A stretch of DNA of 64,000 nucleotides from Macrostomum lignano (GCA_002269645.1 NIVC01003081.1:123710-187709), one strand, 5' to 3'. Numbered from the stretch's first letter, positions 17,528-58,400 are shown. Notes: generated by a model from the sequence alone, not told the origin. Numbers and translations: made by a program.

Positions 17528-17559
<32 letters not shown>

Positions 17560-35053: not shown

Positions 35054-36226
35054 CTACTCGTTGCACACCTGCTGCAGCCGCAGAAACTCTGTTTTATTGA
35101 GAAGTTTCGTGCTCAGCGCAAAGCACAGCATGCTACCTTTTAGACAGGTTGCATCGCTTGATGACGAGCCGAGTCGCAGGCACTGAAACACCACGTTTGA
35201 TCGATCAAGAGGGGCATTTGAAGTTCGTGAAACTCCGACCAGCGATCCGTTTTGGTACACGCGCTGGTGTCCGTTCCGGTCGAAGGTAACCCCAGCAGAG
35301 AACAGGTGCTCAGCTCCGTCAACCGGCAGAAAATAGCTCGAATAGCCGTATATCTTCTCACCAACAGTACCGTCAGCGGACAGCCAGGCATAGCCGTAAA
35401 AGTAATCGTCATTCTTGATGAGCGAGCAACCAATGCCACTGCCCGAGCACGCCTGGAACCTGCTGTAGTACTGTCTCCTGCAGTGATAGCATTCTCATGG
35501 TCAAGCACTATGAAATGCATGTACGAGCTAATCTATCTGCTCAAGTCTAGCGAAAACGACTCACCCGCTAGTAAAAACGTGCCGAACCTGAGCAAAAGTC
35601 GATTAGGTGGAACCGACTCCCAGAAACTTCTCAAAACCGGGAGTCTTAGTGCTCAAGTAGGAGCCCGTGTTGCCCTTGAAGTGAGCACCAGCTGCATCAA
35701 TTGTCACGTCGTGAGCCCTGAGACAGGACAGTCTCGGGTTGACCTCATTCTTCAGACCGCTCCGAGAGAACTTGTAGAACAGCTTCAGCTTGAGCGGTTT
35801 GACCAAGGGCTCAGAAGACTCTGCAGTGGAACAGATCAATTTAAATCAATTTAAACAAAGCAAATGACTTCATTGGAGCGATGCAGAATTGTCAACACAG
35901 CTGCAGCCACTGAGCCGCTCACCGCAGTCTCCGCACAGCACATCGGTGTACTTGTAAGAGTCGCAGTCGCCGTCAGTCCATTGCTTGAGTTGGGAACACG
36001 CGTCTCCATGGTAACACAGGCGGGTGGCGATGTCGAAGTGGAATGCGTTGCAGGTGGGCAGTCGGGAGCAGGCGGCGGCACACTGCAACTTGCTGGCCAG
36101 GCGGTGCGGCAGCGGAGAGGCGTCTGTGGTGGGGCAGCGTCGGGTCTTCTCGAATGACAGCTCAGCAGCAGCAGCAGCAAGTCTGAAAGAGACCAGTGAA
36201 AAAAGCAGAGCTAAAAAATAAATCAT
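35054..36226 (-). pseudogene. PAN/Apple + LamG-like secreted protein, copy A; exons 36226-35923, 35820-35565, 35477-35054; in-frame TAA at 35603-35605
   Basis: Same exon structure as the intact paralogs; TAC(Tyr)>TAA in exon 2 relative to copies B and C. Confidence 0.75.
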
Positions 36227-37164
36227 CCTAGCTTGGAGTTTACTCAGCTTCGTCAGGGCTTAGTTTCAATCGATGCCTGCTGATTCACTCAATTGCTCTC
36301 TATTTTACCTTTATAGGAAAATCTGACTCGTGCTGGCTTATTTGATCACCTCTGCCTTCTAGCTGGTTGCAAATTCAGAAAAGTTGAGTTTCTCTTTGTT
36401 TTGCACTCAGCAAGTATCGATGCTTTTATCAAAAGCATGGATGTCAGGCCTGACAGCAGCATGCAGAATGTCAAACAATATGAAGCATTTTTTGTTTGAA
36501 CAGCGACTGTACCATGGTATCCTTGCATGCATTTTTAAAAAGCTAACTGGAATTGAAGCGACCCGAATCAAACGCAAATCCGACAATTCTGAAGGCGGGA
36601 CGCGCAGTTTTGCTTGCATCAGGCAAGGTGGAAATCGGAACAAGTAAGAGTTGTACATTCCTCTGCAGTCGGGATGCATGATATTGGGTAAAACATCCCA
36701 CGCCTGCCTCCGATTCGGCACCGTCAGCCAATTTTTATCAAGTTCCCAATAGGTTTTAGGATATTCCAATACATTCGTTCGAAGTTCGAAGTCGGTAGTA
36801 AACCAGAGATTAATTTTGAGATGCAAAAAATGCGACATTTATTCGAATAGACGCCATGGTCACTGCTCCAGTATATGAAATTTCGATTTCACAATTAGAA
36901 CTCTGAATACTAAGTTTGCGCGTACCTATTCAAAGGGATTCTGTAAACATTCCATTTGAGAATTGTGGCAATTGTCTGAGGCGTGAGAACTGTGCGTGTT
37001 TTAAACAATGGACAAATATATGTAGGTGCTTGAAGGACACTCAGCAATGAAGTTTTTACACAGCTAACAAATTCACATTTATAAATGTAGGATGGGTTGC
37101 CTTTTGAACCATTTTAATTTTGGAGCAGTTAGTTTGATTTGAAAAGTGTCTGCTCATACAGGAA

Positions 37165-38349
37165 ATGAAAAGGATTCGACTGTCGACTCTGCCCTGCCTC
37201 CTGCTGCTCAGCTGCCTGCTGGCGGCGACTTCAAGCGCCAAGGTGCTGTCGAACTTCGCCGCGGTCAAGACCCGACGCTGCCCCACCGCAGCCGCCTCTC
37301 CGCTGCCGCACCGCCTGGCCAGCAAGCTGCAGTGCGCCGCCGCCTGCTCCCGACTGCCCACCTGCAACGCATTCCACTTCGACATCGCCACCCGCCTGTG
37401 TTACCATGGAGACGCGTGTTCCCAACTCGAACAATGGACTGACGGCGACTGCGACTCTTACAAGTACACCGATGTGCTGTGCGGAGACTGCGGTGAGCGG
37501 CTCAGTGGCTGCAGCTGTCTGGACAATTCTGTATCGCTTCAATAAAATCATTTACCTTGTAGAAAAATAGATTATGAATTTATCACTGCAGAGTCTTCTG
37601 AGCCACTGGTGAAACAGCTCAAGCTGAAGCTGTTCTACAAGTTCTCTCGGAGCGGTCTGAAGAATGAGGTCAACCCGAGACTGTCCTGTCTCAGGGCTCA
37701 CGACGTGACAATTGATGCAGCTGGTGCTCACTTCAAGGGCAACACGAGCTCCTACTTGAGCACTGAGACTCCCGGTTTTGAGAAGCTTCTGGGAGTCGGT
37801 TTCACCTACTCGACTTTTGCGCAGGTTCGGCACGCCATGACTAAGGATGAGTGAGTTGAAACTGTCTGTGATGCTTTGAAACCGCTGCTCACCTTCTAGC
37901 CACGCCTCTACCGCTGCACAAGCAGGTATCAGTACTACAGCCGGTTCCAGGAGTGCTCAGGAACCAACATCGGCAGCTCTCTGATCAAGCGCTCAGAGTA
38001 TTTCTACGGTTTCGCCTGGCTGTCCAGCGGCGGCGGGAGTGTCGGTGAGAGAATTTTCAGATATTCGTCTTTTTTTCTACCGACTGATGGCTCGGTGCGT
38101 CTCCTGTCGGCTGGAGTCACCTTCAACGGGCTGGAGCAGAAGCACATGTATCAGAACGGCACGCTGGTTGCGACGTCTTCGTTTAGTAGAAGTTCTTTGA
38201 CTTCTTCAGCGGCGTCCTTTCAGTGCCTGCGACTCGGATTCGGGCCCACAAGTGACAAATGTCTGAGCGGCACAATGAGTTGCTTTGCCCTGAGCAGTGA
38301 GATGCTCAACGAGTCTGAGTTTCGGCTGCTCCAGCAGCTCTGCTACTGA
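37165..38349 (+). CDS. PAN/Apple + LamG/concanavalin-like secreted protein, copy B; exons 37165-37492, 37592-37850, 37926-38349 (~336 aa)
   Basis: Signal peptide (LPCLLLLSCLLAATSSA); PAN motif C..QCAAACSRLPTCNAFHF..TRLC; GTGAGC donor and CTGCAG acceptor in frame; LamG_3-like LFYKFS..AHFKGN.SYL..YQNG..FQCLRLG..LSGTM.CF..LNESEF. Confidence 0.85.
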
Positions 38350-39521
38350 TTGTGATACAATGACAGCAAACAGAGGTTTCGAAAAACAATTGAAACTGAA
38401 ATGTGACGAAATTCGACACTTATAGTACTTCAAATTAGTTAGGCAACAGGCATTGAAGGATTTTAACAAATAAAACATTGAGTATATTTGTTCCTCAATT
38501 GTGTGCTCTGCTAGATTCTTTTTACACAAGTGCGACTTCATTTCCGTGCCAATATAAAATTTGAGCATTTAGTAAACACTGGTGCATGGGACTACATGTA
38601 TAGTAGACTGTCTCCTCTACAGGTGTTGGCGAACTGCGGCCCTCAGATCCTTTTTTTTAGCTTCACACTAGCAATCCAGCCGGCTCAAGGTTTGTCTCTT
38701 CTCAGCTCTCTTCTAGCTCGTAGTCTCTCCCCTCTCTCTTCTCCCCTTTTCTCTCATCTTTTCTCTTAAATCTCTTCTCTCATCCCATCTCTCGCCTCTC
38801 CTTTCCCCTCTGTCTCTCATCTGGCCCGCAGCCATGAGCTGGATTCTTTATCTATTCCTTAAGATCACAATGTTTGAAAAAGTTATTTTAATATGCGTTA
38901 TTCAGATTAATAATTTATTAATACGTGTTTGAAATTAATATTGCCTTGAATTTTCCATAGATAACCCAATTGTTAGCGTTTCCCACAAAAAGGAAGAACA
39001 AAACAAAATAAAAATTGATAGTAGCAACTGTCATTTGAGTCGGTAAATAAAGTGGTGGAATAGGGCCGCTATCGCTATCTATCACCATCCTAGAGGCGCC
39101 ATCGCTAAGTTTGATAATTGGTGAGAGTGTAAACCAGCAGTAGGAAAACTTTTCTTCCTTAAGATGCAGGCCAGATTTAGAATCGAGAGAGAGGAAAGGA
39201 TAGAAAAGAGGAGAAGCGAGAGATTGGATGAGAGAAGAGATATGAGGAGAGAAAAGGGCAGAGAAGAGGGGGAGAGAAAGGGAGAGAAGAAGAGAGCCAA
39301 TAATAGAGGAGAGTAGAGAAGAGAAGGACAGCTGAGAAGAGGCACAAACCTACAATGAGAGGGCCAGATTGCTATATAGTGTGAAGTTTCAAAAAACCCG
39401 AAGGCCGGATAGAGAGGCTTCCACGGACCGGGAGTTTGCCGACCCTTGTTGGTGTAAAAGAACCTCTACGATCCTAGCTTTCAACAGCCATTTACAACTG
39501 CAGTAGAACGCTACGCTCGAT

Positions 39522-39764
39522 TTTGTTAGAAATGAACTGAAGACCGGTATCAACGAATTTGCATAAAACATAGATAAAAACATTTTCCGGGCATTATTTG
39601 TGTTCTCCGGGATTTTATTTGCCAATATTCAATAATGTCCCGTAAAATCTTTTTGACTATATAAGGCATGCCTTTTTCGGGAGCTATTTTATAAATCCGT
39701 CGGGCCTTCAGCCCTCGCGATTTACGCATTCGTTCATACCGGTCTTCAGTTCATTTCTAAGAAA
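39522..39764. mobile_element. MITE-like element with ~40-bp TIRs
   Basis: TTAGAAATGAACTGAAGACCGGTATCAACGAAT / ATTCGTTCATACCGGTCTTCAGTTCATTTCTAA; superfamily not determined. Confidence 0.6.
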
Positions 39765-40026
39765 CGCATATTTCAACCATAGGTTGAAAAAACGATTTAT
39801 TGAGAGCATAATAAATAATGGTATATTCTTCTGCAGTCGGGATGCTTGATATTGTATTATCAAGCACACAATATCACTCTTGTCTCACTCTTGTCCATAC
39901 ATGCGCAACCCCCAAAATTCGGTCGGCCGTGCGACTTAGTTTTAACAAAACTGCGACGTAGTTTTTGGCCAAAAATGCGACTGACATGTAAAAAACCCTA
40001 AAGCAAAATTGACGCAACTTTGGGTT

Positions 40027-40080
40027 GCAGGAGTAACTATAACTGTCTTATTAAGTCAAAATGCCTCGTCAGCTACTTAG
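40027..40080 (+). other. Degenerate 54-bp fragment of large-subunit (28S) rRNA
   Basis: GCAGGAGTAACTATAACTGTCTTA-TTAAGTCA-AAATGCCTCGTCAGCTACTTAG versus conserved 28S GCGGGAGTAACTATGACTCTCTTA-AGGTAGCC-AAATGCCTCGTCATCTAATTAG, colinear without gaps. Confidence 0.6.
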
Positions 40081-40275
40081 TACTCCTACTTGGGTATTTT
40101 TCCGCGTGGGCATTTTTGCGACTTCCTTGTTTGGCCGCTCTTGTCAGTCTCTGTAGATTGTCCGACAGCCAGCGCTGACGGCAATTCTGCCCGTTCCGCT
40201 GAGTCCTGAGCACATGCAAGTGCGCCAATACTGTACTCAGGCACACACTCATGCACACGCTCACACAGGGTGTAC

Positions 40276-40737
40276 CAGTGGCGTAGCCAGGAATTTCAAT
40301 TGGGGGGGGGGCGGGTTGGCCTGGCTGGCCATGCCTTATGCCATTGCCACTTTTGGCGCCGCAGGCACTCATTTTAGCGCTGCAGGCACTCATTTTGGAA
40401 CCGCAGACACTCATTTTGGCGCCGCAGGCACTCATTTTAGCGCCGCAGGCACTCATTTTGGCGCCGCAGGCACTCATTTTGGCGCCGCAGGCACTCATTT
40501 TGGCGCCGCAGGCACTCATTTTAGCGCCGCAGGCACTCATTTTGGCGCCGCAGGCACTCATTTTGGCGCCGCAGGCACTCATTTTGGCGCCGCAGGCACA
40601 TTTTGGCGCTGCAGGCACTCATTTTTGCGCTGCAGGCACTTAATTGCCTCCAGGTTTTTGGTATCCGCCGCGCCCAACCCCACCCTCCAGGCGATTAGGG
40701 GGGGGGGGCTGCGGCCCACCCCCTGGCTACGCCACTG
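40276..40737. mobile_element. Non-autonomous hAT element with an internal 21-bp minisatellite (GGCGCCGCAGGCACTCATTTT)
   Basis: TIRs CAGTGGCGTAGCCAGG / CCTGGCTACGCCACTG; perfect 8-bp TSD GGGTGTAC on both sides. Confidence 0.9.
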
Positions 40738-41140
40738 GGGTGTACAGTGCACAGAGAATCACCAACGGAAGCTGAAACTATAGTCTAACCAATCTAATCT
40801 CTCCCCATGAACTGTGCTTGCGCAATGCTAAAAGCACCAGTAATTGACGCGGCAGTGAATTCCCGATTCTATTAACTCTTGGCAGTGCAATATTAAAAAG
40901 CAAAGTCTTCATTTTCTTGCTTCGCACTACTCACTTGAAGCTTTCGTGCTTTGAATAATATTGGTCGTAATTAATCGGTCCAGTCAGTCGTATTCATTTT
41001 TTTCGAGACTTGGCGGTCAGAAATCGTTTTACATGCACATGTCAGCAAAACCAAAAGTCCAAATTTCTCATTGACTTCAAAAAGTAGTTTCCTCATTTGG
41101 AACAGGTTGAACTGCAACGCGTGCTGATGGTTATGTTGAA

Positions 41141-42331
41141 TCAGTAGCAGAGCTGCTGCAGCATCTCGTATTCGGTCTGATTGAGCATCTTAGTGCTCAG
41201 GGCGAAGCAACTCATTGAGCCGTTGAGACAACGGTCGCTTGTGAGATGAAATCCCAGTCGGAGGCATTGAAAGGCGGCGATGGAAGAACTATAAGTGTTG
41301 TAAGCCGTCCGATAAATCGCCTCCAAAGTGCCGTTCCTATACACGTCCCTAAACTCGAGTCCGTCGTAGGTGAATCCAGCCGACAGGAGATGCACAGAGC
41401 CGTCGGTAGGGAGGAAGTTTGGTGATAGTCCGTACAGAACCTCGCCGGTGTTGGTAGACAGCCAATTAAAGACGTAGAAATAGTCTTGATACTGGGAAAT
41501 TGAATTGCTGGCGTAATTTCCAGAGCACTCTTGGAATCTGCTGTAGTACTGCCACCTATATGCACAGAGGTAGGTGATACCAGAGAGGTGATGCATGTAA
41601 GTTGCAAGCAATTTAATGTTAAAAGCAGAGTGAATTCTTTCTCACCCGCCGGACATGGCGTGCCGAACCTGCGCAAAAGTTGAGTAGGTGGAACCGACTC
41701 CAAGAAACTTCTCAAAACCGGGGGTCTCAGTGCTCAAGTAGGAGCTCGTGTTGCCCTTGAAGTGAGCACCAGCTGCATCAATTGTCACGTCGTGAGCCCT
41801 GAGACAGGACAGTCTCGGGTTGACCTCATTCTTCAGACCGCTCCGAGAGAACTTGTAGAACAGCTTCAGCTTGAGCTGTTTCACCAGTGGCTCAGAAGAC
41901 TCTGCAGTGATAAATTCATAATCTATTTTTCTACAAGGTAAATGATTTTATTGAAGCGATACAGAATTGTCCAGACAGCTGCAGCCACTGAGCCGCTCAC
42001 CGCAGTCTCCGCACAGCCCATCGGTGTACTTGTAAGAGTCGCAGTCGCCGTCAGTCCATTGCTCGAGTTGGGAACACGCGTCTCCATGGTAACACAGGCG
42101 GGTGGCGATGTCGAAGTGGAATGCGTTGCAGGTGGGCAGTCGGGAGCAGGCGGCGGCGCACTGCAGCTTGCTGGCCAGGCGGTGCGGCAGCGGAGAGGCG
42201 GCCGCAGTGGGGCAGCGTCGAGTCTTGACCGCTGCGAATTTCGGCAGCACCTTGGCGCTTGAAGTCGCCGCCAGGCAGCTGAGCAGCAGGAGGCAGGTGA
42301 AGTGTAGTTGAATAGCGTTCCAGTTCTTCAT
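41141..42331 (-). CDS. PAN/Apple + LamG-like secreted protein, copy C; exons 42331-42001, 41901-41646, 41555-41141 (~333 aa)
   Basis: Open frame across GT-AG junctions; same motifs as copy B; intron 1 nearly identical to that of B. Confidence 0.85.
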
Positions 42332-43561
42332 TTTTTTCCGGAATTTCTCCAACTAACAGCTAGTCCTTGACTCGGCTGCTGCTTTGAGACACCAATTAAA
42401 TAGACCTACTAGTACGAGTCGTATCTGTGGCGCTGCTTCGACAATCAATCAATTTGTGTTTAATAATTCAAATTCAATCAGTTAATTGTCGAGGCAACAA
42501 CAATCTCGGCTCAACTCACCCCGGCGCAACTCCAATCATGATAAGTGCTCACAATTTTGCTTTTGGTAGGTTTGGTGGATTTGTAATTCCTCTTTGTCCT
42601 TATTCTGATGGTCCTAATTCGTGCAATCGAAAATCGGTAACTGCTCAAGCCTGCTCAACTTTGCTTTGTTTTGCTCGAGCCCCTGGCGCTGTTTTTGAGC
42701 CTTTGAGCAGCTGCGTTAATTCATTAAATAACGCCAATCAAACGACAAACTTCCTGAGCGACAGAAGGGGCACAGCTCCTCACTTACCTGGCCCTGAAGG
42801 CGAGCAGCCATGCCCAGAGAGGGCCATGCTGACTGCTCTGAGGTCCCTGCAGTTGAGCCTAATGAGCTATAGGGCTCTACGCAGGCGGAAGGAAGTAGGA
42901 GACGGCAGCACTAGTCGAGCCATCCACAGAAAAGTTCAAAAGTTGGGCAGAGGTTCTCAAGTGCAGGTGCTGTAGCGACATTTCCTTAGTAGTGCGATAA
43001 GGCTGAAATAGATTGTGAAAACTGCAACACAAAGCGTCAGAGAAAACGCTCGAATTGATTTCGCTTGGTCAGACAACCAATTTGCTGTTTTTTAAACAAG
43101 CAATCAGCGTACTGAGCAGTGCAGATGAACCCGCATCGTCTGTCTAATTATTGCATCGATACTTCACCTAGGTTGATGAAACAATGAGAGAATGGGACAG
43201 CAATTGGTAAGTGTCAATCCAAAACGATTTGCGTGTAAAATTGGCACTGTGAAGAGGACACCTACGAGCCACCGACATCAGTTATAGAGGATTTGAAGTG
43301 CATGGTCTGCCCCTCCCCTTGAATTAAAGAAGACAGCATACAAATATCCAAATACTCGTACAAAATTCTATTCTCAAAACCTGCGCGTCAATCACTATAA
43401 ACACTCAAGAATGAAGCATCGCCCATTTCTGAAAAGGAATAGCTATATGGAACTGGAACCAAATTTTAAGTTAAGATAAACCAACCCGTGTCTAAAATAC
43501 ACTGGCTACAGGTTTTACCAAGAGAGCCGCCCTACAATTAGCTAAGGCAAAGTCCATCCGA

Positions 43562-44733
43562 ATGTCAGTGCTCTGCCTCCTGCTGCTCAGCTGCCTGCTG
43601 GCGGCGACTTCAAGCGCCAAGTTGCTGCCAAACTTCGCAGCAACAAAGACCCGACGCTGCCCCACCGCGGCCGCCTCTACGCTGCCGCACCGCCTGGCCA
43701 GCAAGCTGCAGTGCGCCGCCGCCTGCTCCCGACTGCCCACCTGCAACGCATTCCACTTCGACATCGCCACCCGCCTGTGTTACCATGGAGACGCGTGTTC
43801 CCAACTCGAGCAATGGACTGACGGCGACTGCGACTCTTACAAGTACACCGATGTGCTGTGCGGAGACTGCGGTGAGCGGCTCAGCGGCTGCTGTCTTGAC
43901 AGCTCTGCGTCTCTCCAATGAAATCAGTTACTTTGTTTAAATTGATTATGCATTTATCACTGCAGAGTCTTCTGAGCCCCTGGTGAAACAGCTCAAGCTG
44001 AAGCTGTTCTACAAGTTCTCTCGGAGCGGTCTGAAGAATGAGGTCAACCCGAGAATGTCCTGTCTCAAGGCTTACGATGTAACAATTGATGCAGCTGGTG
44101 CTCACTTTAAAGGCAATACAAGCTCCTACCTGAGCACTGAAACTCCTGGTTTTGAGAAGCTTCTGGACTATGGAAAGAACTACTCCTTCTTTTTGAAGTT
44201 CGCTGATGCAATGGAAGGCGTGTGAGTTGTTATAAAGAACAATTCAATAAGGTAGATTCTGATTAGTAAGGCATTTTAAACACCTCTCTCTGCGCCACAG
44301 CAACACAATCTACCATCGCTACCAGCTATGCAAAGACGAGACGAGCACTCCGGCGAACACATTCGGCCGCAGTCTCGGTGGCATCTACAACTACGCGGCC
44401 TGGACCGTTCGCTTCGATGGCGCCGGGTACCTTCGGGCGTCATCCTCAGAGCTGCTTGACACCACCGATGCTTTGCGCAAACTGTCGATTGGCGTTGTCT
44501 TCTCAGCTAAGAAACAGATGCACTTCTACTTCAACGGCGCACTGTCAATGATTGATGCGTTAAGCGGCGGGTTTTCTCCGGTGCCACGTGAGGAGTTTCA
44601 CTGCCTTCGGCTGGGCTACCACAGCTTCCAGGAGAAATGCCTGAAGGGCAGCATGGCCTGCTACGGTCTGGCTGCAAAAGCCTTCGGATTAGCTGACTTT
44701 GCTGCGGTTGAGCGGCTGTGTGAAACCGATTGA
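43562..44733 (+). CDS. PAN/Apple + LamG-like secreted protein, copy D; exons 43562-43871, 43966-44221, 44301-44733 (~332 aa)
   Basis: Open frame across junctions; constant N-module; divergent C-module retaining YHRYQLC, FYFNG, FHCLRLG, CLKGSMACYG. Confidence 0.85.
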
Positions 44734-45089
44734 GACTTGATTTAAGTTACCCAAAGCCGATTTTGCATGGATTTCTAAGGATCTGAGGCTTAAGGCTCGT
44801 TCACTCCTCGATTAAATAAACAACGATATCAAGCGTTTAATATAACAATTGAGGCCTAACAAAATTTTGCACTTTGGGTTTTGGGTGATCAGGTGCTTAC
44901 AATAGGCAAGGAACGGAACCATGGGAACATCAAAAAGGATTCGGCTGGCGTCGGGATCGGCTGTACGTATAGTAGGGGCATCTGATGTGATGTGCAAGTG
45001 ATGTGCAGACCTGTGCAAAGAAGTGTGTACGTTAAAAATACGTAAAAAATTTACAGTTTAAATATTTCCGGAAACAATCAACTCTCATC

Positions 45090-46368
45090 TAGGGGTGTTC
45101 GGGTCGGCCATTTTTTCGGGGTTCGGGGTTTACCCCGAACCCGGTACCCATACCCCGAACCCCGAACCCCGTCCCGAACATTTCTTCCAACCCCGAACCC
45201 CGAACCCGGTACCAAAACCCGACCCGACCCCGAACGTAACCCCGAACATTTTCACGCTTATTTTGGTCAATCATTTTAATAAATTAATACACTTTTTCCA
45301 CCGATAAAGGTACAATATTCATTTGTACTTCACTTCAATTGTAAGCCTTTTGGGCGCGACGTTAGCTCATGAATGACTTGGGACAAACACAGGTTTATAT
45401 TTGTTGTATAAGTGTAAATGGTATACTTCTTGCAATGGGATTGGGATTGAGATGGAAGGAATACCAAGACCCAAGATCTAATTAGTAAGATACATGAAAG
45501 TTCACAACTAAAATCAGGACCATTTCGTACCTATACTTACAACGAAATTGCTTTCATAGTAATATTACATCTATGAGTTTATTTAAGCTGCAAAAATAGA
45601 GTACAATAAAATTAGATTATACCCTGTAGTGTAGATATCAGTAGAGATAGAACTAGAGCGATAAAGAGATAGCACAGATAAAACAATGATACAATGAAAC
45701 AGGAGAGTTAATCACAAATATATATTTATTTTTACTTTTGACTACAGTTAACAGTAAGTCAGTAGTGGTATAACAGAATTGCTATGTAAAAACTAAAGTG
45801 ACGTCTTTACATAAAATTGTATGCTGATATGAGTAGGTAATCATTGTGATAATTGATTATTGGCGACTGATGCGTGGAGAATAATAGTGTATTTATAAAT
45901 TTTAAGCTTCCTCATCCAATCCAGAAGTTCATTCCATGTTACACGTAGCACATGTAAAATTAATACTGAACGTAATTTTTTAAATCATCAACTGCAAGAC
46001 TGAATGGGTCGAAAAACGACAATCGTTATTTACCAGAAAGTGTAAATGAATCCATGGTTCTATCTGCTATTTCCGTTTCAAATTGTATGTAAAATATAAC
46101 TTAAGTTGTACCTGAAACTCAATGCATATCTTTCGCATTGTGGATTTTGCATAAGGAGTAAAAAGTGCTTGAAAATACTCTTGAGAATGATAATTGTTCA
46201 AAACCCCGAAAACTCCGAAAACCCGGTGGCCAAACCCGACCCGAACCCCGAACCCGGTACCCCTACCCCGAACCCCGAACCCGACCCGGAACACCTACCC
46301 CGAACCCCGAACCCGGTACCAAAACCCGACCCGAAACCCGACCCGACCCCGAACCCCGAACACCCCTA
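45090..46368. mobile_element. Non-autonomous hAT element with CCCGAA/CCCGAC subterminal repeats
   Basis: TIRs TAGGGGTGTTCGGG / CCCGAACACCCCTA; perfect 8-bp TSD CTCTCATC; AT-rich non-coding interior. Confidence 0.9.
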
Positions 46369-48098
46369 CTCTCATCGACTTTTTGCCAAGGCACAAGGGC
46401 ACAGAGCTAGTCCATATACTAACTGCAGGCTGTTAGAATGCATTTGCACTCGTATTGGGCTATCCGTTAAGTAAACTCTCTCAGCAAAAACCTTCAATAT
46501 TTACTGACAATTTCGCCACCAACTCTGCAGCAGTGTAAATTCGTAAAAAAACACATTTTTTACCTAATGATAATACTTTGTGCATTGTAGAGTCGCTATT
46601 AATATTGTTCACTAACTGCCATCATTAGGGCTAACGGGTTTTAAACATTCACCTGCTCTCGAGCCCAGAATTATCTTTGTGTTTAACGGCCAAAAGGACA
46701 AAACAAATCAGTCAAATCGACTTTTTTACTTTGATTTTGTACGATATACAAAGTCAATATAGTTTTGGAATCATTCAACCCAAAGATCACTAGTTGTGGA
46801 TGTATAAAGCTGATTAGTACTAACAAATTTCCGACTTTCGCTGCGAAATTTCTTGGTGAGAAAGAGAGTCCAAGGACCACCTAGAAGTTATTATTGTATC
46901 AGGACGTAACACTCATAAATATTGCTAAATTATTGGAAGTTAACCTACAGAAAGTGCATTTCTCGCCTCTTTCCCAGTCTCATCCTTTTCCCGAGACACA
47001 ACAACTTCTATTGTAATTTATCGGTTGTAGGAGGACTGAGAACTATTTATCAGTCCCCAAACGAGGACTGAGAAATAGTTCTCAGTCCTGCTATAGTTGT
47101 ATGTAACAAATGTACGCTCGTAGACTAAAAAACCGCAATTGTTCACGTGTATTTAGCGATGCTTGCTTTCGAAAATGCATTCTATTCGACAGATTTAGAG
47201 TTATGAGCATTTCAAGTTTAGCTGCAATGCAAACAAGCGGTACTTCAAAAGTTACATCCTGAAACAACGGTAACTTCTAGTGGTCTTTGAGAGAGTTTAT
47301 AAGAATTCAAAAGTTCACAACACAATAGGTATTCTAATCTTTTAAACATCCGAGTAAGCGTTTTTGTTTAAAGTTCGGAGTTATCTAGATCCACTACAAG
47401 CGTTGTTTGTCTACTGCAAGTAGTATCCCTCAGGTCCTTTGACCTGTCGCTTGTTTTCCTAATACTTTTTTCCAGTCGGCCATTTATTCGTGTTTGAAAG
47501 TGTTCCAAAATGTCTGAAACTGTCTGACAAAACAGCGCTTTTTCAGACCAAGTCTTCCCCACAATCACGGAAAAGGACCAGACTCTCAATGTTTGTAAGA
47601 CAGACAGCGCGTGCGTGTGTTTGCATGCGGAAATCAGAGAGCGGTGATGGAGAAAAGTGACAACACATCCGATGCCATGGGGAGCCGCAACTCCAACAGC
47701 TACATTTATGTGGCTGGGAAAGGTTTTAAGGTAAACCTGAAAATTCTGGAGCCTAGTCATACAGTCATGTGATGCTTTTACCACCCCTTGCATAGAAAAG
47801 CGACCCTGATGCGTCCATTGTCTTCGCAACAGTGACGACTGTCTGTCTGCTTGCTTTGCAAATGTTCCAGACCTGATCAACTGCAGATGTCCCTTTCAAA
47901 TCAAACAAAATGGATGTAAAGAAAGCTCACTCGCTGAAAGTCGAGACGGGAATTGCTGATTCAGACTTCCGGAAAGCAGTTGAGCTGACAATCATTGCAT
48001 ACGGACGTTTTTCTTCACCAAACCAGATCGATATCTTTCTGACAGCTTAAAAGCATCAGTTGTGAGCCGAATTTCGCATCGCGATCGGAGCTCTCACA

Positions 48099-49307
48099 AT
48101 GCATTGGAACAAAGTCTCGAGTTGCATGGCGGTTCTGATGCTGCTATTTTTGTTGTCCTGCCTGGGCCCGGCTGCTGGCAGCCAGCTCGTGTCCTTCGTG
48201 ACTGTTAAAAAGTGTCCCACCGCAGCCGCCTCTCCGCTGCGGCACCGCCTGGCCAGCAAGCTGCAGTGCGCCGCCGCCTGCTCCCGACTGCCCACCTGCA
48301 ACGCATTCCACTTCAACATCACCACCCGCCTGTGTTACCATGGAGACGCGTGTTCCCAACTCGAGCAATGGACTGACGGCGACTGCGACTCTTACAAGTA
48401 CACTGATGTGCTGTGCGGAGACTGCGGTGAGCGGCTCAGCGGCTGCTGTCTTGACAATTCTGTATCGCTCCAATGAAGTCATTTGCTTTGTTTAAATTGA
48501 TTATGCATTTATCACTGCAGAGTCTTCTGAGCCCCTGGTGAAACAGCTCAAGCTGAAGCTGTTCTACAAGTTCTCTCGGAGCGGTCTGAAGAATGAGGTC
48601 AACCCGAGACTGTCCTGTCTCAAGGCTCACGACGTGACAATTGATGCAGCAGGTGCTCACTTCAAGGGCAACAGGAGCTCCTACCTGAGCACTGAGACTC
48701 CCGGTTTTGAGAAGCTTCTGGACTCTGCTACTGAATACTCCATCTATTTTCAAGTAAAGCACATTTTTGATGCTGGGTAAGTTTAACTGTTTAAATACCC
48801 CAATGAAAGCATGGTAAAATAGTACCAATTATTTTCTAAAAAAACATTATCATATTCTGACCATCAATTATGATCTGCAGGTGGGTTTACTACCATCGTT
48901 TCCTGCGCTGCGGGACCCAGGTGTATGCCGGAAACTCGCTTTACAAGTGGAACAATAAATTAACTTTGCAAACAACGCATTTATTAAGCAACGGTTCTGT
49001 TCTTGGTTTCTATTATTCGTCACCCTCTGTCTTGCCCACTGACGGTCTGCAGCACCAAATGTCAACAGGATTCGCTTTTGGCGGCCTCTCTAACCAGGGA
49101 TTTTTCTTGAATGACTCTGTCACTGCTGCTGACCCAAGTTCATCTGGTGGCTTATATTCTCCAAGCGATTTCGGGTGTCTGCATCTTGGCCAAGGTAAGA
49201 TGGATTCCAACAGTCTTAGCGGCAGCATGAGCTGCTACGGAATGAGCACCAAGATGCTCAGCCTGAACGAGTTTGAGCTAATCCGGAAGCTGTGCAATTC
49301 GGACTAA
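48099..49307 (+). CDS. PAN/Apple + LamG-like secreted protein, copy E; exons 48099-48426, 48521-48776, 48881-49307 (~336 aa)
   Basis: Distinct signal peptide, constant PAN module, divergent exon 3 (YYHRFLRC, LPTDG, FGCLHLG, LSGSMSCYG). Confidence 0.85.
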
Positions 49308-49484
49308 AATGGTTTTTTAACTGGGCAAAAACGGCTCGTTGGACGTTGAATTGAACAGCTAGCAAACGCTGATGGAATTCATGAACTTTAATTCGTTCTT
49401 ACGATTGCTGAGACAATGTTTTCGGAAGAACTTCAACAAGCAGACAAATATTCACTGTTCATTATTTGAATATTTACTATTAAC

Positions 49485-49850
49485 TACTCAAATATTCACT
49501 ACTCAAATATTCACTACTCAAATATTCACTACTCAAATATTCACTACTCAAATATTCACTACTTAAATATTCACTACTCAAATATTCACTACTCAAATAT
49601 TCACTATTCAAATATTCACTACTTAAATATTCACTACTCAAATATTCACTACTCAAATATTCACTTTACTCGAATATTCACTACTCAAATATTCACTACT
49701 CAATATTCACTACTCAAATATTCACTACTTAAATATTCACTACTCAAATATTCACTACTCAAGTATTCACTACTCAATATTCACTACCCAAATATTCACT
49801 ACTCAAATATTCACTTTACTCAAATATTCGCCACTCAAATATTCGCTATT
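49485..49850. repeat. 17-bp minisatellite (ACTACTCAAATATTCAC)
   Basis: Tandem array. Confidence 0.95.
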
Positions 49851-50806
49851 CGAGTCTGTTGTACCAATACCAACTCTTGTAGAACCTCGTGCTTGTCCCA
49901 GCTTATAAAAGCTAGATTATTCTTAAAATTGTTTTGAAATATTTTAGTGAGTAGAAGAAATGGCGCTTTACAATTTGATTTTATGTTGAAAAAACGCAAT
50001 TTTTTTAACGAAATATTTTAAACTACCGTTTAAGAGTGTCATTTATTTTCTTATACCGAATTATTTATTTATTTGTTTTTCATAATTATTTGTTCAATCA
50101 CTCTAAAATATACGCTCTTATATAAACAATTATTTATCCATAATAACTGAGCCAACTGAGCATATTTACTAAAAACAACAAACAGAGAAGGTCATCTTTT
50201 TGTCAAGGCTCTCTTTGTCTTTGCAACCGTCTTTCTTATACTTCCAAGCAGTAGAGTTCATCTATGAGCGTAATTATCACAATGTACACAAGTCTGGCGT
50301 AACTCTGTATTGCGTAATTTTCATACGCAAGCAATCTCACGTGACTATCTAATGTAAGATACAATGTTTTCATGGAGTACGTCTCTCGGGTTTTAATGGA
50401 AAACTAAAACTCAATACAAATAAAGTAAGACCGGTATCTAGCCTCGCCAAGACTTTGAGCAAACTGATTTTAACCGCAAGAGCAAGCCTTCTCGTAGAGT
50501 CCCATTGTCAGATGCATATTTTGAAACGATCTTTGTAAAATGGGTGCTAGTCTTAGAATTGCCTGACAGTCCGTGTTTGATTGAGGTCTGCTATCGACAC
50601 TACTGGCGAGGTAAGGCCGTCCCTCGATCATCTATTTTTTATCGGCAAAAACTCGCATGCAAAAGACTCGTGTGAAAAATCTAGTTTGAGCAGAAATCGC
50701 CATTCTGTCAAATTTTGTTTGAACGAAGTCGCTCTCTGTACTCAGACTTTATTCAGAACAATTCCGAATGATGTAGCAACAGAGGCAATTGTCTGACTCA
50801 AAGTGT

Positions 50807-51921
50807 TCCAAACTCGAGCAATGGACTGACGGTGACTGCGACTTTTACAAGTACACCGATGTGCTGTGCGGAGACTGCGGTGAGCGGCTCAGCGGCTGCT
50901 GTCTTGACAGCTCTGCGTCTCTCCAATGAAATCATTTACTTTTTTAAACTGATTATGCATTTATCACTGCAGATTCTTCTGAGCCCCTGGTGAAACAGCT
51001 CAAGCTGAAGCTGTTCTACAAGTTCTCTCGGAGCGGTCTGAAGAATGAGGTCAACCCGAGACTGTCCTGTCTCAGGGCTCACGATGTGACAGTTGATGCA
51101 GCCGGTGCTCACTTTGCTGGCAACTCTGGTTCCTTTCTGAGTACTGAGACTCTCAAGTTGAACGAATTTCTCCAGCCAAAACCTTTTAAATTCTCGGCTT
51201 TTGTTAGTATCCGACACGCCTTCGAAACCGGGTAAGTGCTTTTCTCCCACTCCATTGTCTGTGGCTATGTGACGAGCTGTAAACAGTAACTATAAACTGT
51301 AAACGATCTATGATAATACCGGTATTTTCAGTAGGATTTTGTAATTTACAATGGTCACTTTCTATATCACCAGGCACGTACACTCTCTCGGTGCCTTGGT
51401 GTTCGTCAATATGAGTTTTTGGTACACAAGCCCCGAATACGAAGTAGAAGTAGAGCGGATTTACAGTTATCATTGGTTGCTCTTATACGCTCGTATTTTA
51501 TTACACACTGATTGAGGCGCAACTTTCGATGAACCGGTGCATTCTTTCTTGAACTCGAACTTGGAAAACCGAATTTCCTGGACTAATCGTCGATCATCGA
51601 TTACTGGACTAATCGGCCACTCGGCCGCAGTTTTGCCTACCGATGGGAGGCGAGCGACCATCACAGCTGGATATGCTTTAACGTGTCGCACCATCGCACT
51701 TTTATTCAAAAGGCTCAACTGCATCCGTGGACCATGTTCAAGCGATGACATCAGGAAATGATTTGTCCATGTACTCTCGTTTCTTCGAATGTCTAACTCT
51801 GGGCAAGGCTGGATCTGGTAGCCAGAACCTCAACGGCACCATGCACTGCTTCGGGTTCAGCGATAAAGCGCTGAGCCTGAGCGAGTTTCAGCATCTGGAT
51901 CAGCTCTGCACTGACTACTGA
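50807..51921 (+). pseudogene. PAN/Apple + LamG-like copy F, 5'-truncated; remnant exon to 50879, exon 50973-51231, exon ~51467-51921 with TGA at 51513 and a frameshift near 51680
   Basis: Homology starts abruptly inside the PAN tail, with no signal peptide; the stop falls at the conserved Cys position; the LPTDG and FECLTLG motifs lie in different frames. Confidence 0.75.
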
Positions 51922-53227
51922 CTCAGCAGTAGCTAAATCACAGATGAAGCACCACGGTTAACTCAAGTGAAACGAATCTTTTTTTTACATTTTAACATCC
52001 AACTACCATTAGAAATATTTCTTCGTAGTACTCAGGTAGAAGTTAATATCTCTGCTTTTTCTAAAAATTATTTTAACTATAATCTGTCGTTGCACTACGA
52101 CTATATTTTGTTAAACCATGCAGAGTCGATAATGCCTGCTTACACCCATTTTTCTTATCTAATTAAATATCTGAATCCATTTATTATGATTAAAACACTA
52201 AAATATTTTTTGTATATCAGCCAGGAAAAATTAACAATCAAAAGTACTATAAGCACTTGCACTCTCCTAGCAACCTTTCTAAAACCGCAATTTTAACTTG
52301 AGCAGCATGGGATATTTTAAATAATTAATTTTACCAATAAAAAGTTTACGATTTTGTTCAAATTAGATATGAATCTAAGCAATGAAACTGATTTTTCTAA
52401 CCGTCTCTCGGTCTCAAACCAGACGCTGCTGACGGTCGACGATAAGTCCATGGTGAGCAAGATTTTCAGAGGATGACCACCAGTTGAGGTTTGTCTACTG
52501 TGGAGGCTTGATCAACGAAACTATAGAGAAACTCGCAACAGGTTGTCCATAGTCACCTGGTGCCGCACCTGTTAAAGGTCCAGAAGCTCTACCTGGTTGA
52601 GGGCCAGTGACCAATAAAGTCAGAGCTGATGCAGGCTGCACATTCGGTCGACGTGATGATGAAGTTAGGAGGCTTGTCAAGGTATTTGACCTTCTGGCAG
52701 AATCGTTGAATATCTAGACGGTCCGAAGGGCTGGGGACTTGATTCTTGGTTGAGCAACAAGTTTGCGCATCAAAGAGTAGCGCGCGTGTTCTTAAATTTC
52801 GTGCTCTTGCGATACTCTGTTCCGACGCAGACAAAAAATTGTCATCATGAACCTCTCCTACCCCTTAATTGCCCGTAAAAATCTCTAGTCTGAAGCACAG
52901 GCTCAGGTTTCGTTTCTTGTTCAAGACTCACTTCATGGTACATGTAAGAATCAATCAATGTCAAAGTCACACTGAATACATGAATGCACATTAAAACTCA
53001 GTCAAGCACGTGACAAAAACAATTCAGACGAATAACTGGTGCACCCATTTAATCGTAAACGAAGCCTTTGAGATTCTCTTGGCTGACTGGACAACCAATA
53101 AAAGCAGGGCCAGCTAAATAAATAATTGCTAAATTCAAATCGATACAACCTATCTTGACTAAACTTATAAGCCACATGGTAATAATTTTTGTACTGGCAC
53201 AAACTGAGCTGGAAGCCACAAATTCAA

Positions 53228-54386
53228 ATGAGAGTGCTCTGCCTCCTGCTGCTCAGCTGCCTGCTGGCGGCGACTTCAAGCACCGAGGTGCTGCCGAAAT
53301 TCGCAGCGACAAAGACCCGACGCTGCCCCACCGCGGCCGCCTCTCCGCTGCCGCACCGCCTGGCCAGTAAGCTGCAGTGCGCCGCCGCCTGCTCCCGACT
53401 GCCCACCTGCAACGCATTCCACTTCGACATCACCACCCGTCTGTGTTACCATGGAGACGCGTGTTCCCAACTCGAGCAATGGACTGACGGCGACTGCGAC
53501 TCTTACAAGTACACCGATGTGCTGTGCGGAGACTGCGGTGAGCGGCTCGGTGGCTGCTGTCGTGACAGCTCTGCGTCTCTGCAATGAAATTTTTACTTTG
53601 TTTAAATTGATTATGCATTTATCACTGCAGAGTCTTCTGAGCCGCTGGTGAAACAGCTCAAGCTGAAGCTGTTCTACAAGTTCTCTCGGAGCGGTCTGAA
53701 GAATGAGGTCAACCCGAGACTGTCCTGTCTCAAGGCTCACGATGTGACTATTGATGCAGCTGGTGCCCACTTTGCTGGTGAAACAGGCTCCTACCTGAGC
53801 ACCGAGACTCCCGGGTTCTGGAACTTTCTATCGATGAACCAAGAATTCTCAGCGTTTACTAGAGTCAGACACCCTTTTGGCATTGGGTATTGCACTTTTT
53901 TTTCAAAGTACATGTTGCAATTCTGGTTTAGTTCATCCGTAAAATACAGTTACTTTACATAATCTTTATTTCAGCTATCAGTTCTACCACAGATTCCAGC
54001 AGTGCAACGGAAACACGGGAAACACTTTTGCTAAAAGCAACGACTACATCTACAACGGAGCTGTACTCAACAACAATGCCGTGCTGTTCTCATTGTCGCC
54101 ATCATTTCTACCCTCCGGTGGCATGCATAAAGAGATTTCTGTTGGTTTCACATTCAACAGAACTGCGCATCAGCAATTTTTCTTCAACGGCTCCATCGCT
54201 CCGGTTTTCTATACCTACTCAGAGGCGAACTCTTATTCGACAAGTCTGTTCGAGTGTCTTCGCCTGGGCCAATCGCTGGTTGATGCCAACTGCCTCAACG
54301 GCGTCATGCTCTGCTACGCATTCAGCGCAAAAGTGCTGAGCGCCAGCGAGTTTGAGCAGCTCCAGCAGCTCTGCGACTCCGATTGA
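53228..54386 (+). CDS. PAN/Apple + LamG-like secreted protein, copy G; exons 53228-53537, 53631-53886, 53975-54386 (~325 aa)
   Basis: Open frame across junctions (second donor GTATTG is weak); FYHRFQQC, FFFNG, FECLRLG, CLNGVMLCY. Confidence 0.8.
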
Positions 54387-57300
54387 ACAGCTGGAAAGCG
54401 AATACTTTGTTAGCGGAAATTAAATAGAAAGTCTGGAAACTGCGTGTAAAACTGACACTAACGTGTCGCGTTATTGAGAGAAAACAATTTAATTAAACCG
54501 CGGGTAATGCTGAGAAACAATGGCACGACAAAAACTGATTGTCGAATTCGTGACAAAAATTCAAATCTGACTTGGGAGAAATTTCTGAGAAAAGCACGAT
54601 TCTTGTTAAAATAAAGTTTTATTAAACATCTTCTTAAGCTTTGATACTCAGCAGTTGAGGCTTGATTAGGGACATCAGAGACTTCCGGGAGGGGGGTTAG
54701 CCTTCATAAGCTCGAAAACGACCTCCTCCAGACGGAATCGAACCCTCGGGGTCGTGGCGCAACTAGAAATGTGTTCACTAAAGACAATCTTTTTAAACAA
54801 ATACATGTACTTTCCTGATGGAATTACATTGGAGATATAATGGATGATACTGCACCCATTGTGACTGCATGAACCCATATGGATCAGCGTGGCACCATCT
54901 ATATTTGGCTACCAGAAAAAGTTTTGCAGACGCTACCCTTGGTGCTGTGGGCACGAAGGATATTAATATCCTGATTCAAAAGTACATTTATAAAGACAAA
55001 ACTACATATTTTATGGCTATTACGAGCTAGAGTAAGCTAAAGCAGTTTAGTCAAAATGACTTTCGCAGCACGAAAGTCAGTTGACCTACTATCAAAACTA
55101 CCAGATGGGCGAAGTCTGCAACCGTCGCGGCATCGTTGTAGTCTGAGCAGTAGGGACATTCAAACGAGCCGCACACCTTGCAGATATCGGCGCTATGAAG
55201 CGAATGCGCTCTGTAGTACCTACAAAGTTCCCGTTGTCTAAAACAATATTTAAGCGATAGAATTCTTAAAATGGCAAACACGAAAACAAAAAATTTGGAC
55301 GCTGTTCGGTTGGGTAGCTTTTAACGGCTTAGAATGAGTCGAATGGTTGAAATGACGCTTAATTAATAAAACAAATAAATTGTAAACAAATAAAAAATAA
55401 TATTAATTTACAGTTGTTGTTAAAATTTTCATGCAAAAAACTTAATGAGAATATTTTTGTTTGGATTGGTGATTAAAAACTCTATGCCGGTCTAACTATA
55501 AGCTACTCAGAATACGCGCCCCATGCGTAGGCACAAAAGCATGCATGCTACCATTTTCGAAATAGTCGTAGACTTGACAGTACTGTTCCACCGTGGCGTT
55601 TGCGACCGGATGCCATCTCGGATAGTTCAACGTAATGCAGGTTTTCTCCGTTGATGTAAACTGGAATCGGATGATATTAGAATATTAATTGTCGTTGTGA
55701 AATAGCCTATTGAACCTTTAGATGCTACTAACATAATGGACCACTAAAGTCTCGTAGAAAGAAAGCTACAATAGAAAATAGTGTGATAGTTAACCTCTAA
55801 GCACCCAAAGCACACTGAATTATTCTCAAAATTAGTCAGCATAAGACGAAAAAGTTGGTACGTGGTGAAAATCACGCAATTTACGAGTCCCTCCAAGAAT
55901 TACTCCTACTCTGACGCTCACATTAGTAAAAAACATGCTGACAGTCTGGCCGCTTTCCCAAATGTGCCGCAGGCCTCTAATTCGGGAGTTCTGCACAAGA
56001 TTGCGCAGGTCGTAGTTGGTCAGCTTGTAGCCGCTGGGCAGGGCGTAGGACAAGATGGCCATGCCGCTGGTCTCCGATTCTGCAGTCCAGGTCCATCTGG
56101 CAGTAAAAGTTTATCCAGGATTTCCGGCCAATGTTTAATAAACAGTCATATATAATAATAACAGACAATATTGAAAGTGTGACTAGTCTGGCATTGATGC
56201 TTTGTAATTTTTAATAAGGTTTTCAATTACAATGTCTGTACTTTCTCTATTTGTCGAGAAAGTGACGTCACTCACCGAGCACAAGTTGTCATAGTGAATA
56301 TGCTGGCATTCCGACCAGAGTAGGAGGGCAGGCAGGTCAAATCGAAGGTCTGCAAAGAGCCCTGCGGATGAATTGGATCCGCAGCGTTCTTGATCTGAAA
56401 GTCGTGCTCGGCACTCTTTTTAGTAAATAGTTGCAGCACCGCGCACCCGCTGCCGGACGCTCGCACGGTGACCTCGCCCCAGGTGTCGTCATTATCCAAG
56501 TTAAACACTCGCGGCAGGGTCAGGTTTTCACTGTCGAGTACGAATGTTTCAGCTTTAGCAATATTCGAGCTCGGCACAATGTCGATTTGCAGCTTATAGA
56601 CGGGACGGTTTAAATCCAGCGTGGCCATTTCGCGCAGCGCCTTCACTGCAAACACAGTGTCCTGCGTGGAGACCCAGCCGTTAGTCATGTTCTTAGTCTC
56701 TGTGATAAAGTTCAGCATCTCTGTTAGGTTAGCCTGAAGCTCTTGATCAGCATTCGGGATCGCGTCCTGATCAGAGCCATCAGGGCGAATGAGGTGCCTG
56801 GACAGCTGTGCCATCGTTGGGCCACTCAATCCTCGGCTTGATCACGATTTTTCCCGCTGAGTCAGGCTCTCGAATCAGAGGTCTCACGATGCTATTAGCC
56901 CAATAAAGATAATTGTCAGCTCGCACTGTGCTCATCAGCATCTCTCGAGCGATGAATTTTGACTGCAAAGTATCGTCGTCAAAGGTGAGGGCGTACGCCG
57001 TCATGGCCAGGCAGAGGGCGTAGCGGTTCATTATGGATAGGTGACGGCGCAGATAGTCGATGGCGGCATTGCTGACCTCCTCCGGCCAACTGGCTAAGCG
57101 GCTTGGGAGTATTCGGATGCTTTTTTGCCAGCACAGCTAGTGCGGTGATGGGCGTTCGCTCCAAGTAGATCTTCGTATCGTTGCTGAACAGTTTCTCAGT
57201 CATGTAGGGGCACATGTGCTTGATGTCCCACTTCGTCTTGTCATTGAACGATCCATATAGATCGCCAGTTCTAACCTGGGTTGCGTTTAAATACACCAAA

Positions 57301-58400
57301 TACCGCTGAAACACATCGAAACTGATGAACACCGTTTGGTCCCACTCGGAGAAGGCCGTCTCAGCCAAGGTGAACAGTCCGAATGCGGTCAGGAACGCGC
57401 TGGTCTCGCCCAAGAATCTCTCTGGAAAGTTGGAGACTCCGCCGCTGACTGGATCCATGTAGAAGGACAGTCGGGTGTACTGCGTGTTGATGTATTTCAG
57501 CGAAGCGGCTAACGTCGCCGGTTCCAACTGCTTTGTCATTCGCAAGTAGTGCAGCATCTGCACATTCCTGTTGATGTTGAAGAGGACGCTCTCGGCCGAG
57601 CCGACGGGCTTCCACGCCGAGCAGGAGGCGTCGCAAAATGGCTCGGCAGGGCCAAGTGTCGGCCCGACGATGTCGCCCGCCACCGTCAGCACCGCGGCCT
57701 TGGAGCGGGGCACGAACCGACGCCAGCGCTGATCCGGCTCGACAAACGACTGCTCGGGGATGAGGTAGAGATTCTGTGCCATCAGCTCCGAGTTGTCAAC
57801 CAGATCGAGCAGGATCGGCGTGCTGTACGAGTTAGAGATGCCGTTGATCTGAAACAAAAGTTGTTCATTGGATAAGGGAGCGTTAGAAATATGTTTATTG
57901 CACCTTTTAAACTGTGCCCTTCCTGTGTTATGTTTGGTACAAAAAGATAGAATAATAGCGCCAAGTCAATTAGAGAAGTCAACAGTGAGATGCTACTTTC
58001 ACAGTCTTCCCCGTTGAACACATTTGAAAGACCGACTTTGCAATCAGACGCTCTCTCTTTCTCCTGCAGTAGCCAGATTGTAAGCAACTCAGCTTTGTAC
58101 ACAATCTGGCCTGTTGCGGCTCTCAGATAGACCATAGTGTGAATGGTGGCGTTGGATTTTAGTGCGGGACTGTAACTGTTCACCTGGCCTTTCCAGCCAA
58201 CGGATACAAAATCGCAGTCAGTATTTTGCTTCATCTCGACTAGAACCTGAAATTTAGTCGTTTTATTATGCGCTCTACATAATCAAGCTACAAATATAGG
58301 TGTTCTTTCTGCTTCAGCTGCCATGACCTGTACAACCATGTAATCTACGCGACTAAGAAGTCGCTAGAAGTCGCTAAACGGCTTATGCAAACAGTATGTT

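Follow-up and report, generated by a model that had tools for sequence, protein, structure and literature searches.

Why do neighbouring copies of one gene read as near-identical over their 5' part and as barely related over the rest, with the switch falling inside an exon? The question is raised by an array of gene copies at positions 35054-54386 of a 64,000-nucleotide stretch of the Macrostomum lignano genome (NIVC01003081.1:123710-187709), the whole of which we refer to as the window. A preliminary description of the locus took it for a diversified recognition family in which a shared effector module is joined to a variable binding module. We find that its domain call was essentially right and that its evolutionary and functional interpretation needs replacing. 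The array most likely consists of old, Macrostomum-restricted paralogues whose 5' block has been homogenised by recurrent non-allelic gene conversion, and the switch, which follows the motif ..TETPGF, most plausibly marks the edge of a conversion tract. It is a textbook case of partial concerted evolution, not a new kind of system.

The open reading frame (ORF) track between 34 and 55.5 kb shows three ORF fragments that recur seven times on both strands. Together with an alignment of the seven loci, this resolves into seven copies of a single three-exon gene in both orientations, in the order A-, B+, C-, D+, E+, F+, G+. When the assembled products were searched against the window by tblastn, no further copies were detected. 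The extent, number and orientations first reported are thereby borne out. Splice models were read from the sequence alone. Every intact copy yields a predicted three-exon ORF with GT-AG introns, the first in phase 1 (93-102 nucleotides, GTGAGC...CTGCAG) and the second in phase 2 (75-104 nucleotides), in keeping with the proposal that splicing joins the fragments into genes. The two predicted junctions read GDC|ESSEP and ..G|..Y.RF..C. The copies, with their predicted exons, are as follows.

35054..36226, minus strand: copy A, probable young pseudogene or nonsense allele; exons 36226-35923, 35820-35565 and 35477-35054
37165..38349, plus strand: copy B, intact, 336 aa, head-to-head with A; exons 37165-37492, 37592-37850 and 37926-38349
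41141..42331, minus strand: copy C, intact, 333 aa, used for the structural model; exons 42331-42001, 41901-41646 and 41555-41141
43562..44733, plus strand: copy D, intact, 332 aa, most divergent C-terminal part; exons 43562-43871, 43966-44221 and 44301-44733
48099..49307, plus strand: copy E, intact, 336 aa, with its own signal peptide; exons 48099-48426, 48521-48776 and 48881-49307
50803..51921, plus strand: copy F, degenerate; exon-1 remnant 50803-50879, exon 2 50973-51231, exon-3 remnant ~51633-51921
53228..54386, plus strand: copy G, intact, 325 aa; exons 53228-53537, 53631-53886 and 53975-54386

The term seven-gene array holds for the number of copies, but only five of the seven (B, C, D, E and G; products of 325-336 aa) are intact. 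Copy A is open over 327 codons except for a single in-frame TAA in exon 2 (35605-35603, minus strand), which occupies the position of a Tyr conserved in the other copies; we regard it as a probable young pseudogene or nonsense allele. Homology in copy F begins only at 50803, leaving it with no start codon, no signal peptide and no first half of the PAN domain, and its exon 3 carries a frameshift near 51669-51690 and has lost the Y.RF..C motif. Copies A and B, like C and D, form head-to-head pairs with start codons ~0.9-1.2 kb apart, and the DNA between A and B has no detectable similarity to that between C and D. Signal peptides were called by eye from hydrophobic N-termini. As had been remarked, they differ among copies: B, C, D and G share one type, and A and E each have a signal peptide unrelated to it.

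Similarity between copies changes sharply along the gene. Mean pairwise DNA identities over the six copies A-E and G are:

PAN part of exon 1: 97%
Intron 1: 82% (range 73-100%; B and C are 100% identical)
First 188 alignment columns of exon 2, the constant part: 94%
Rest of exon 2: 56%
Intron 2: 32%
Exon 3: 49%
Flanks: 23-40%

Identity is thus far from uniform, running from 97% down to the 23-40% of the flanks, and both intron 2 and the flanks are unalignable between copies. The fall occurs within exon 2, immediately after ..TETPGF, as the preliminary description had it. A two-breakpoint maximum chi-square analysis places the boundaries: differences amount to 2-9% of sites inside the breakpoints versus 38-60% outside, a contrast reached in none of 100 permutations. 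For every pair that includes D, E or G, the 3' breakpoint is placed at alignment columns 787-813, a range that takes in the end of TPGF (column 796); within A, B and C it is at columns 850-858. The 5' breakpoint lies at about column 184 in B, C, D and G, where the shared signal peptide is included, and at about 265-279 in A and E. By self-blastn, a block of 500-600 bp is the only sequence common to all copies, and no intergenic DNA is common to them. This block is 91-95% identical among the six full-length copies A-E and G, and 87-93% identical between these and F. We read it as homogenised, with the following positions.

37190..37792, plus strand: block in B, comprising signal peptide, PAN exon, intron 1 and the first two-thirds of exon 2
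35620-36148: equivalent block in A
41703-42296: equivalent block in C
43561-44166: equivalent block in D
48213-48721: equivalent block in E
50803-51152: equivalent block in F
53227-53829: equivalent block in G

Outside the block the copies are not uniformly distant. Copies A, B and C are 81-83% identical at the DNA level across the whole gene (self-blastn). Given that their similarity continues through the whole gene, the array is not a set of seven equally divergent C-modules.

Substitution rates bear on what produced this pattern. We estimated nonsynonymous (dN) and synonymous (dS) divergence pairwise by the Nei-Gojobori method, with the block defined as CPT..TPGF. Within the block, dS is 0.04-0.22 and dN 0.003-0.04, with dN/dS of 0.08-0.41. 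Downstream of it, dS runs from 0.76 to saturation and dN from 0.30 to 0.98, with dN/dS of 0.14-0.68. Purifying selection acts on the block too, but alone it cannot yield the observed pattern. Since silent sites and intron 1 have been homogenised along with coding sites, the data point to gene conversion and not to protein-level constraint alone. The paralogues are of graded age, and their diverged 3' part is under purifying selection.

Relationships among the copies also shift along the gene. D and G are closest to each other in the signal region (dS 0.077), yet they are saturated in the C-terminal part, and in intron 1 the grouping of the variants changes from one sub-segment to another, giving {A,B,C}, {D,F,G} or {A,E}. 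Such incongruent, mosaic relationships support conversion. Four M. lignano paralogues from beyond the array (P0006, P0008 and segments of P0005 and P0003) provide an outside calibration. Their C-terminal parts are 17-31% identical to that of copy C and thus as diverged as that of copy D. Their N-terminal parts, in contrast, are only 39-57% identical, compared with 94-100% inside the array. In these unconverted paralogues the N-terminal part is about twice as conserved as the C-terminal part. A further sequence, P0001, matches the PAN exon at 97% identity and the exon-2 part at only 70%, suggesting a shorter tract. Finally, GC content at third codon positions (GC3) is 0.69-0.75 in the block versus 0.54-0.67 outside it, a rise in the direction expected from GC-biased conversion.

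We therefore favour a model in which recurrent non-allelic conversion between direct and inverted copies would homogenise a block of 500-600 bp made up of the bulk of exon 1, intron 1 and the 5' two-thirds of exon 2. What remains of exon 2, together with intron 2, exon 3 and intergenic sequence, would lie beyond the tracts and would have diverged to synonymous saturation under moderate purifying selection. The switch after ..TETPGF would then be the shared 3' edge of the tracts. This edge may perpetuate itself, if the diverged downstream DNA is so rich in mismatches that heteroduplex extension is rejected. Conservation of the PAN part would be owed partly to constraint (dN/dS 0.08-0.41) and partly to homogenisation.

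The predicted product of each intact gene is a secreted protein of ~330 aa in which a PAN/Apple-like domain and then a ConA-like jelly roll follow the signal peptide, an architecture that is supported at the fold level. PAN_1 (PF00024) matched the window copies at 17.9-18.9 bits (E 1.4e-3 to 2.8e-3), below its gathering cut-off of 21.4 bits. Laminin_G_3 (PF13385) matched B at 18.7 bits and C at 16.1 bits, below its cut-off of 27.6 bits, and this Pfam model gave no match in D, E or G. The window copies are not formal members of either Pfam family. Across a family alignment of 21 sequences (A2), PAN_1 was detected in 16 members (best E 1.7e-4) and Laminin_G_3 in four (best E 4.2e-6). The A2 profile matched solved PAN domains at marginal significance (6ryw, E 3.1e-4; MIC4 apple, 1.5e-3; HGF N domain, 0.013), and it matched the Hc domain of botulinum neurotoxin (BoNT) with E 9e-4.

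Structural modelling strengthens the assignment. An AlphaFold2 run with six close sequences only was discarded (predicted local distance difference test score, pLDDT, 47), and the 21-sequence A2 run was used instead. The resulting model of copy C has a pLDDT of 86 and a predicted template-modelling (TM) score of 0.81. In it, residues ~34-102 form a helix-on-sheet domain and residues ~122-333 a large beta-sandwich. The N-domain is modelled as strand-strand-helix (55-64)-three strands with pLDDT 79-94, and the jelly roll as ~17 strands over residues 122-316. Cysteines 40, 58, 62, 68, 80, 86, 97, 107 and 110 are invariant in all copies. A Foldseek search of the PDB returned 266 matches at E <= 1e-3 and identified the sandwich as a two-sheet jelly roll. 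The top matches are to the N-terminal lectin-like jelly roll of the Hc of tetanus neurotoxin (TeNT) and BoNT (E 6e-8, probability 1.0), with TM scores of 0.46-0.49 when normalised to the whole 333-residue query. PAN structures are absent from the top 50 matches, a list dominated by the jelly roll. Taken together, the sub-threshold Pfam hits, the profile matches, the confident model and the Foldseek results uphold the original view of a secreted protein that pairs a PAN/Apple with a LamG- or ConA-like domain, the C-module being a jelly-roll sandwich in the model.

The same model shows where the constant block ends. Its last residue, ~173, lies beyond the fifth strand of the jelly roll; in terms of the modelled fold the constant block therefore combines the PAN domain with a quarter of the lectin-like domain and is not a structural unit. 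A shared effector module followed by a variable binding module, as first envisaged, does not describe such a gene. Identity of the variable part to copy C is 0.44 in predicted strands and 0.47 in loops; a few indels aside, there is no contrast between scaffold and loops. By this comparison of predicted strands and loops with copy C, loop-focused hypervariability was not found. Pairwise dN/dS among the six copies never exceeds 0.68 in the variable part and gives no sign of diversifying selection there, with the proviso that dS is saturated. The variable part is best read as old divergence under purifying selection, not as focused hypervariability.

How strongly do these results tell against selection as the architect of the array? 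The preliminary description implied a selected constant/variable repertoire of recognition proteins, in which the invariant PAN part is an effector or oligomerisation module and the C-module is under positive selection; conversion would then be only the tool of selection. We consider this unlikely. The predicted secretion and binding-type folds of the products speak for it, as does the lineage-specific expansion of the family, but the edge of the block cuts through the jelly roll and does not separate the domains. Likewise, purifying selection on the block (dN/dS 0.08-0.41) and the roughly twofold greater conservation of the N-terminal part, which is seen even in unconverted paralogues, would suit an invariant module, whereas protein selection leaves the synonymous and intron identity unexplained. 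The 3' tract edge common to nearly all pairs is also in its favour. Against a C-module under positive selection stand a dN/dS of 0.14-0.68 that never rises above 1 and divergence that is equal in strands and loops; moreover, two of the seven copies are decaying. Another role for selection is conceivable, though again rather improbable: conversion would keep the PAN domain and the first strands as a common 'handle' that docks one shared partner, while conversion of the C-terminal part would be selected against, so that distinct ligand specificities are kept. Such docking might serve, for example, oligomerisation or anchoring in a secretion or on a cell. If this were true, the array would be a germline-encoded flatworm repertoire for recognition or adhesion, built on a previously undescribed architecture of PAN plus a neurotoxin-HCN-like domain.

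Explanations that dispense with sequence exchange fare worse. Hypermutation of one part of a gene was once proposed for toxin genes, and here it would make all copies recent duplicates (of an age near dS 0.1) whose 3' half was scrambled by locally accelerated mutation. The abrupt transition and the extreme divergence of the C-terminal part, synonymous sites included, could be taken that way. Yet the flanks on both sides, intron 2, all intergenic DNA and, in A and E, the signal peptides are equally unalignable, which means that hypermutation would need to spare only one island of 550 bp; in addition, paralogues located elsewhere in the genome have equally diverged C-terminal parts, and the 81-83% identity of A, B and C over the whole gene implies graded ages. 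We judge this account very improbable. The same holds, to an equal degree, for selection on the nucleotide sequence of the block itself, whether through strong codon bias, a regulatory element, or a functional RNA or antisense gene that overlaps it. High GC3 in the block and long antisense ORFs across exon 1 are compatible with it, but such ORFs are normal for GC-rich coding sequence. It also sits poorly with the co-conservation of intron 1, the indel haplotypes shared in mosaic patterns, a 5' edge that varies among copies and the loss of the block's identity in paralogues outside the array. Least probable of all is an assembly artefact in which a repeat was collapsed or copied in by the assembler: although the chimeric UniRef entry A0A1I8HM75 (below) shows that assemblers or annotators stumble here, the seven blocks differ at 2-9% of sites with copy-specific substitutions and indels, and their reading frames and splice sites are kept. 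Two further candidates were ruled out. A mobile cassette as the source of the constant block is incompatible with 5' edges that vary by copy and with the lack of shared flanks or terminal repeats, and protocadherin-like splicing to shared exons is incompatible with the presence of the constant exons in every copy.

Recurrent gene conversion between old paralogues thus remains our preferred reading, and several points weigh against it. The difference in GC3 is modest, the case comes from a single species, M. lignano, and the joining of exons 1 to 3 in the array copies is predicted. The 3' tract edge coincides in 12 of 15 pairs, which could reflect selection against conversion of the C-terminal part and would partly favour the preliminary description. 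Saturated dS makes the dN/dS of the variable part imprecise and, with six sequences, site-specific positive selection is possible. As for function, the reading draws only on domain analogy, by which the products may be extracellular binding proteins; the divergent C-terminal three-quarters of the jelly roll would then probably give each paralogue a different ligand preference.

Comparison with better-known systems helps to place the array. Slightom et al. are said to have described, in 1980, partial interlocus gene conversion in the human G-gamma and A-gamma globin genes. Those duplicates resemble the array in having a near-identical 5' part that includes an intron, a far more diverged 3' part and a sharp intragenic boundary. 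The array differs in having seven copies in both orientations with far older flanks (dS saturated), and in a single boundary that is common to nearly all pairs and lies inside an exon and a domain. No simple-sequence hotspot was seen at its tract edge. Conotoxins and snake-venom phospholipases A2 are likewise secreted and combine a very conserved 5' part, silent sites included, with a divergent 3' part. In these toxins, dN/dS of the mature part exceeds 1 and the boundary follows exon or propeptide limits, whereas in the array dN/dS is below 1, the boundary lies within a domain, and the products are two-domain proteins of 330 aa, not small toxins.

FREPs of Biomphalaria and VCBPs of amphioxus, the models invoked by the preliminary description, are also lineage-specific, multi-copy, secreted invertebrate proteins that pair two binding-type domains. 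The domains themselves differ: IgSF and fibrinogen in FREPs, V-Ig and chitin-binding in VCBPs, PAN and ConA-like here. Focused hypervariability and positive selection were tested in the array and not found. With a dN/dS of 0.14-0.68, strands that vary as much as loops, synonymous and intron identity in the block, and two of seven copies defective, the array gives little support to a FREP- or VCBP-type design. Among structures, the clostridial neurotoxin HCN domain, together with Laminin_G_3, is the best match for residues ~120-333, and its weak profile match is consistent with this. Sequence identity to HCN is only 12-17%, however, and the array protein, in which this fold is fused to a PAN domain, lacks translocation and protease parts. 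The cysteine-rich alpha/beta N-domain aligns to PAN_1, PAN_4 and solved PAN structures, as in the HGF N domain, factor XI/prekallikrein and Toxoplasma MIC4, but the array protein has a single PAN with extra cysteines, nine in the mature N-terminal part. We know of no described architecture that fuses PAN to a ConA-like domain.

The family is narrowly distributed. A word-index search of a database of 5.8 billion proteins matched only two M. lignano UniRef entries, and a HMMER search of 1.84 billion representative proteins with the family profile gave 25 matches at E < 1e-3. All species-named matches are M. lignano proteins. Their names are automatic, 'Apple domain-containing' among them and 'Lectin_legB domain-containing' in one case, and the set includes NCBI BOX15_Mlig models. 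Short ORFs on ENA or JGI metagenome contigs account for three of the 25 (P0009, P0018 and P0022). A scan of metagenome loci found no locus related to the array, and a search for contigs encoding the two M. lignano UniRef models found none. Only one contig with a distant homologue was retrieved. That contig (L002; JGI sample 3300040801, Ga0450804_4006235) carries, at ~200-1270, a complete relative with ~30% identity. Its PAN and exon-2 parts are contiguous, with intron 1 missing and an intron at the position of intron 2. This arrangement provides independent support that both parts belong to one protein, and the homologue indicates that the family is present in at least one other organism. A second contig from the same sample, L001, has an exon-2-like and an exon-3-like ORF. 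The family is thus a Macrostomum-centred, uncharacterised expansion that is essentially restricted to Macrostomum, and the earlier judgement that it is lineage-specific and undescribed agrees with the automatic annotation of all its named homologues. Searches for Macrostomum PAN, Apple or ConA proteins, for the gene identifiers and for gene conversion returned no literature specific to the family. The main text of a screen for seminal-fluid genes by in situ hybridization contains no mention of PAN/Apple or ConA-like domains.

One of the two UniRef entries matched by the word-index search illustrates the practical consequences of the block. A0A1I8HM75 (P0002), from M. lignano, is identical residue for residue to copy D over residues 102-279 of the latter (~177 aa). 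Its 5' end, comprising the signal peptide and the start of the PAN domain, is instead E-like, with four differences from E, which makes it a chimeric model. It is not a simple read-through, because D lies upstream of E in the window. Either assembly or annotation went wrong across the near-identical block, or the entry represents a genuine recombinant copy from a different (homeologous) locus.

The near-identical block thus gives rise to chimeric gene models of this kind, and phylogenies or dN/dS scans run on the undivided gene would be misled by it. The array offers a clean and compact case in which concerted and divergent evolution coexist within single genes, and its sharp tract edge inside an exon and a fold should be useful for studying what limits conversion tracts. 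M. lignano is an experimentally tractable flatworm with transgenesis and RNA interference. By domain analogy, the uncharacterised secreted PAN plus ConA-like proteins, restricted to Macrostomum, may be candidates for roles in mucus, adhesion, reproduction or defence.

The array is preceded by a run of housekeeping genes that spans 7100-33650 on the plus strand:

7.1-13.6 kb, plus strand: PX/Vps5-type sorting nexin
18.5-20.8 kb, plus strand: MCM-binding protein (MCMBP)
~24-32 kb, plus strand: FANCD2
33.2-33.6 kb, plus strand: GINS-complex subunit

Directly downstream of the array, at 56272-58234 on the minus strand, lies a gene of the alpha-2-macroglobulin/TEP type (TED_complement domain, E 9.5e-9). 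At the expected position of the thioester motif GCGEQ its ORF reads ..KPVGSAESVLFN.., an apparent replacement of both the thioester Cys and the Gln. Beyond this gene, at 60162-61713 on the plus strand, is a retrotransposon pol fragment with an integrase core (rve, E 7e-10).

Minisatellites occur in many introns and spacers of the window. Long arrays in the introns of the sorting nexin, MCMBP and FANCD2 genes (9981-13028, 15961-18486, 22047-22891, 24852-25941 and 27168-27804) are the source, on both strands, of numerous spurious ORFs (130-420 aa) encoded by the repeats. In and around the gene array, tandem repeats lie upstream of A (14/17-bp repeats, 33776-34391), between B and C (21-bp unit x14, 40351-40640), between D and E (CCCGAAC-type repeats, 46220-46361) and just downstream of E (15-bp unit x25, 49445-49851).

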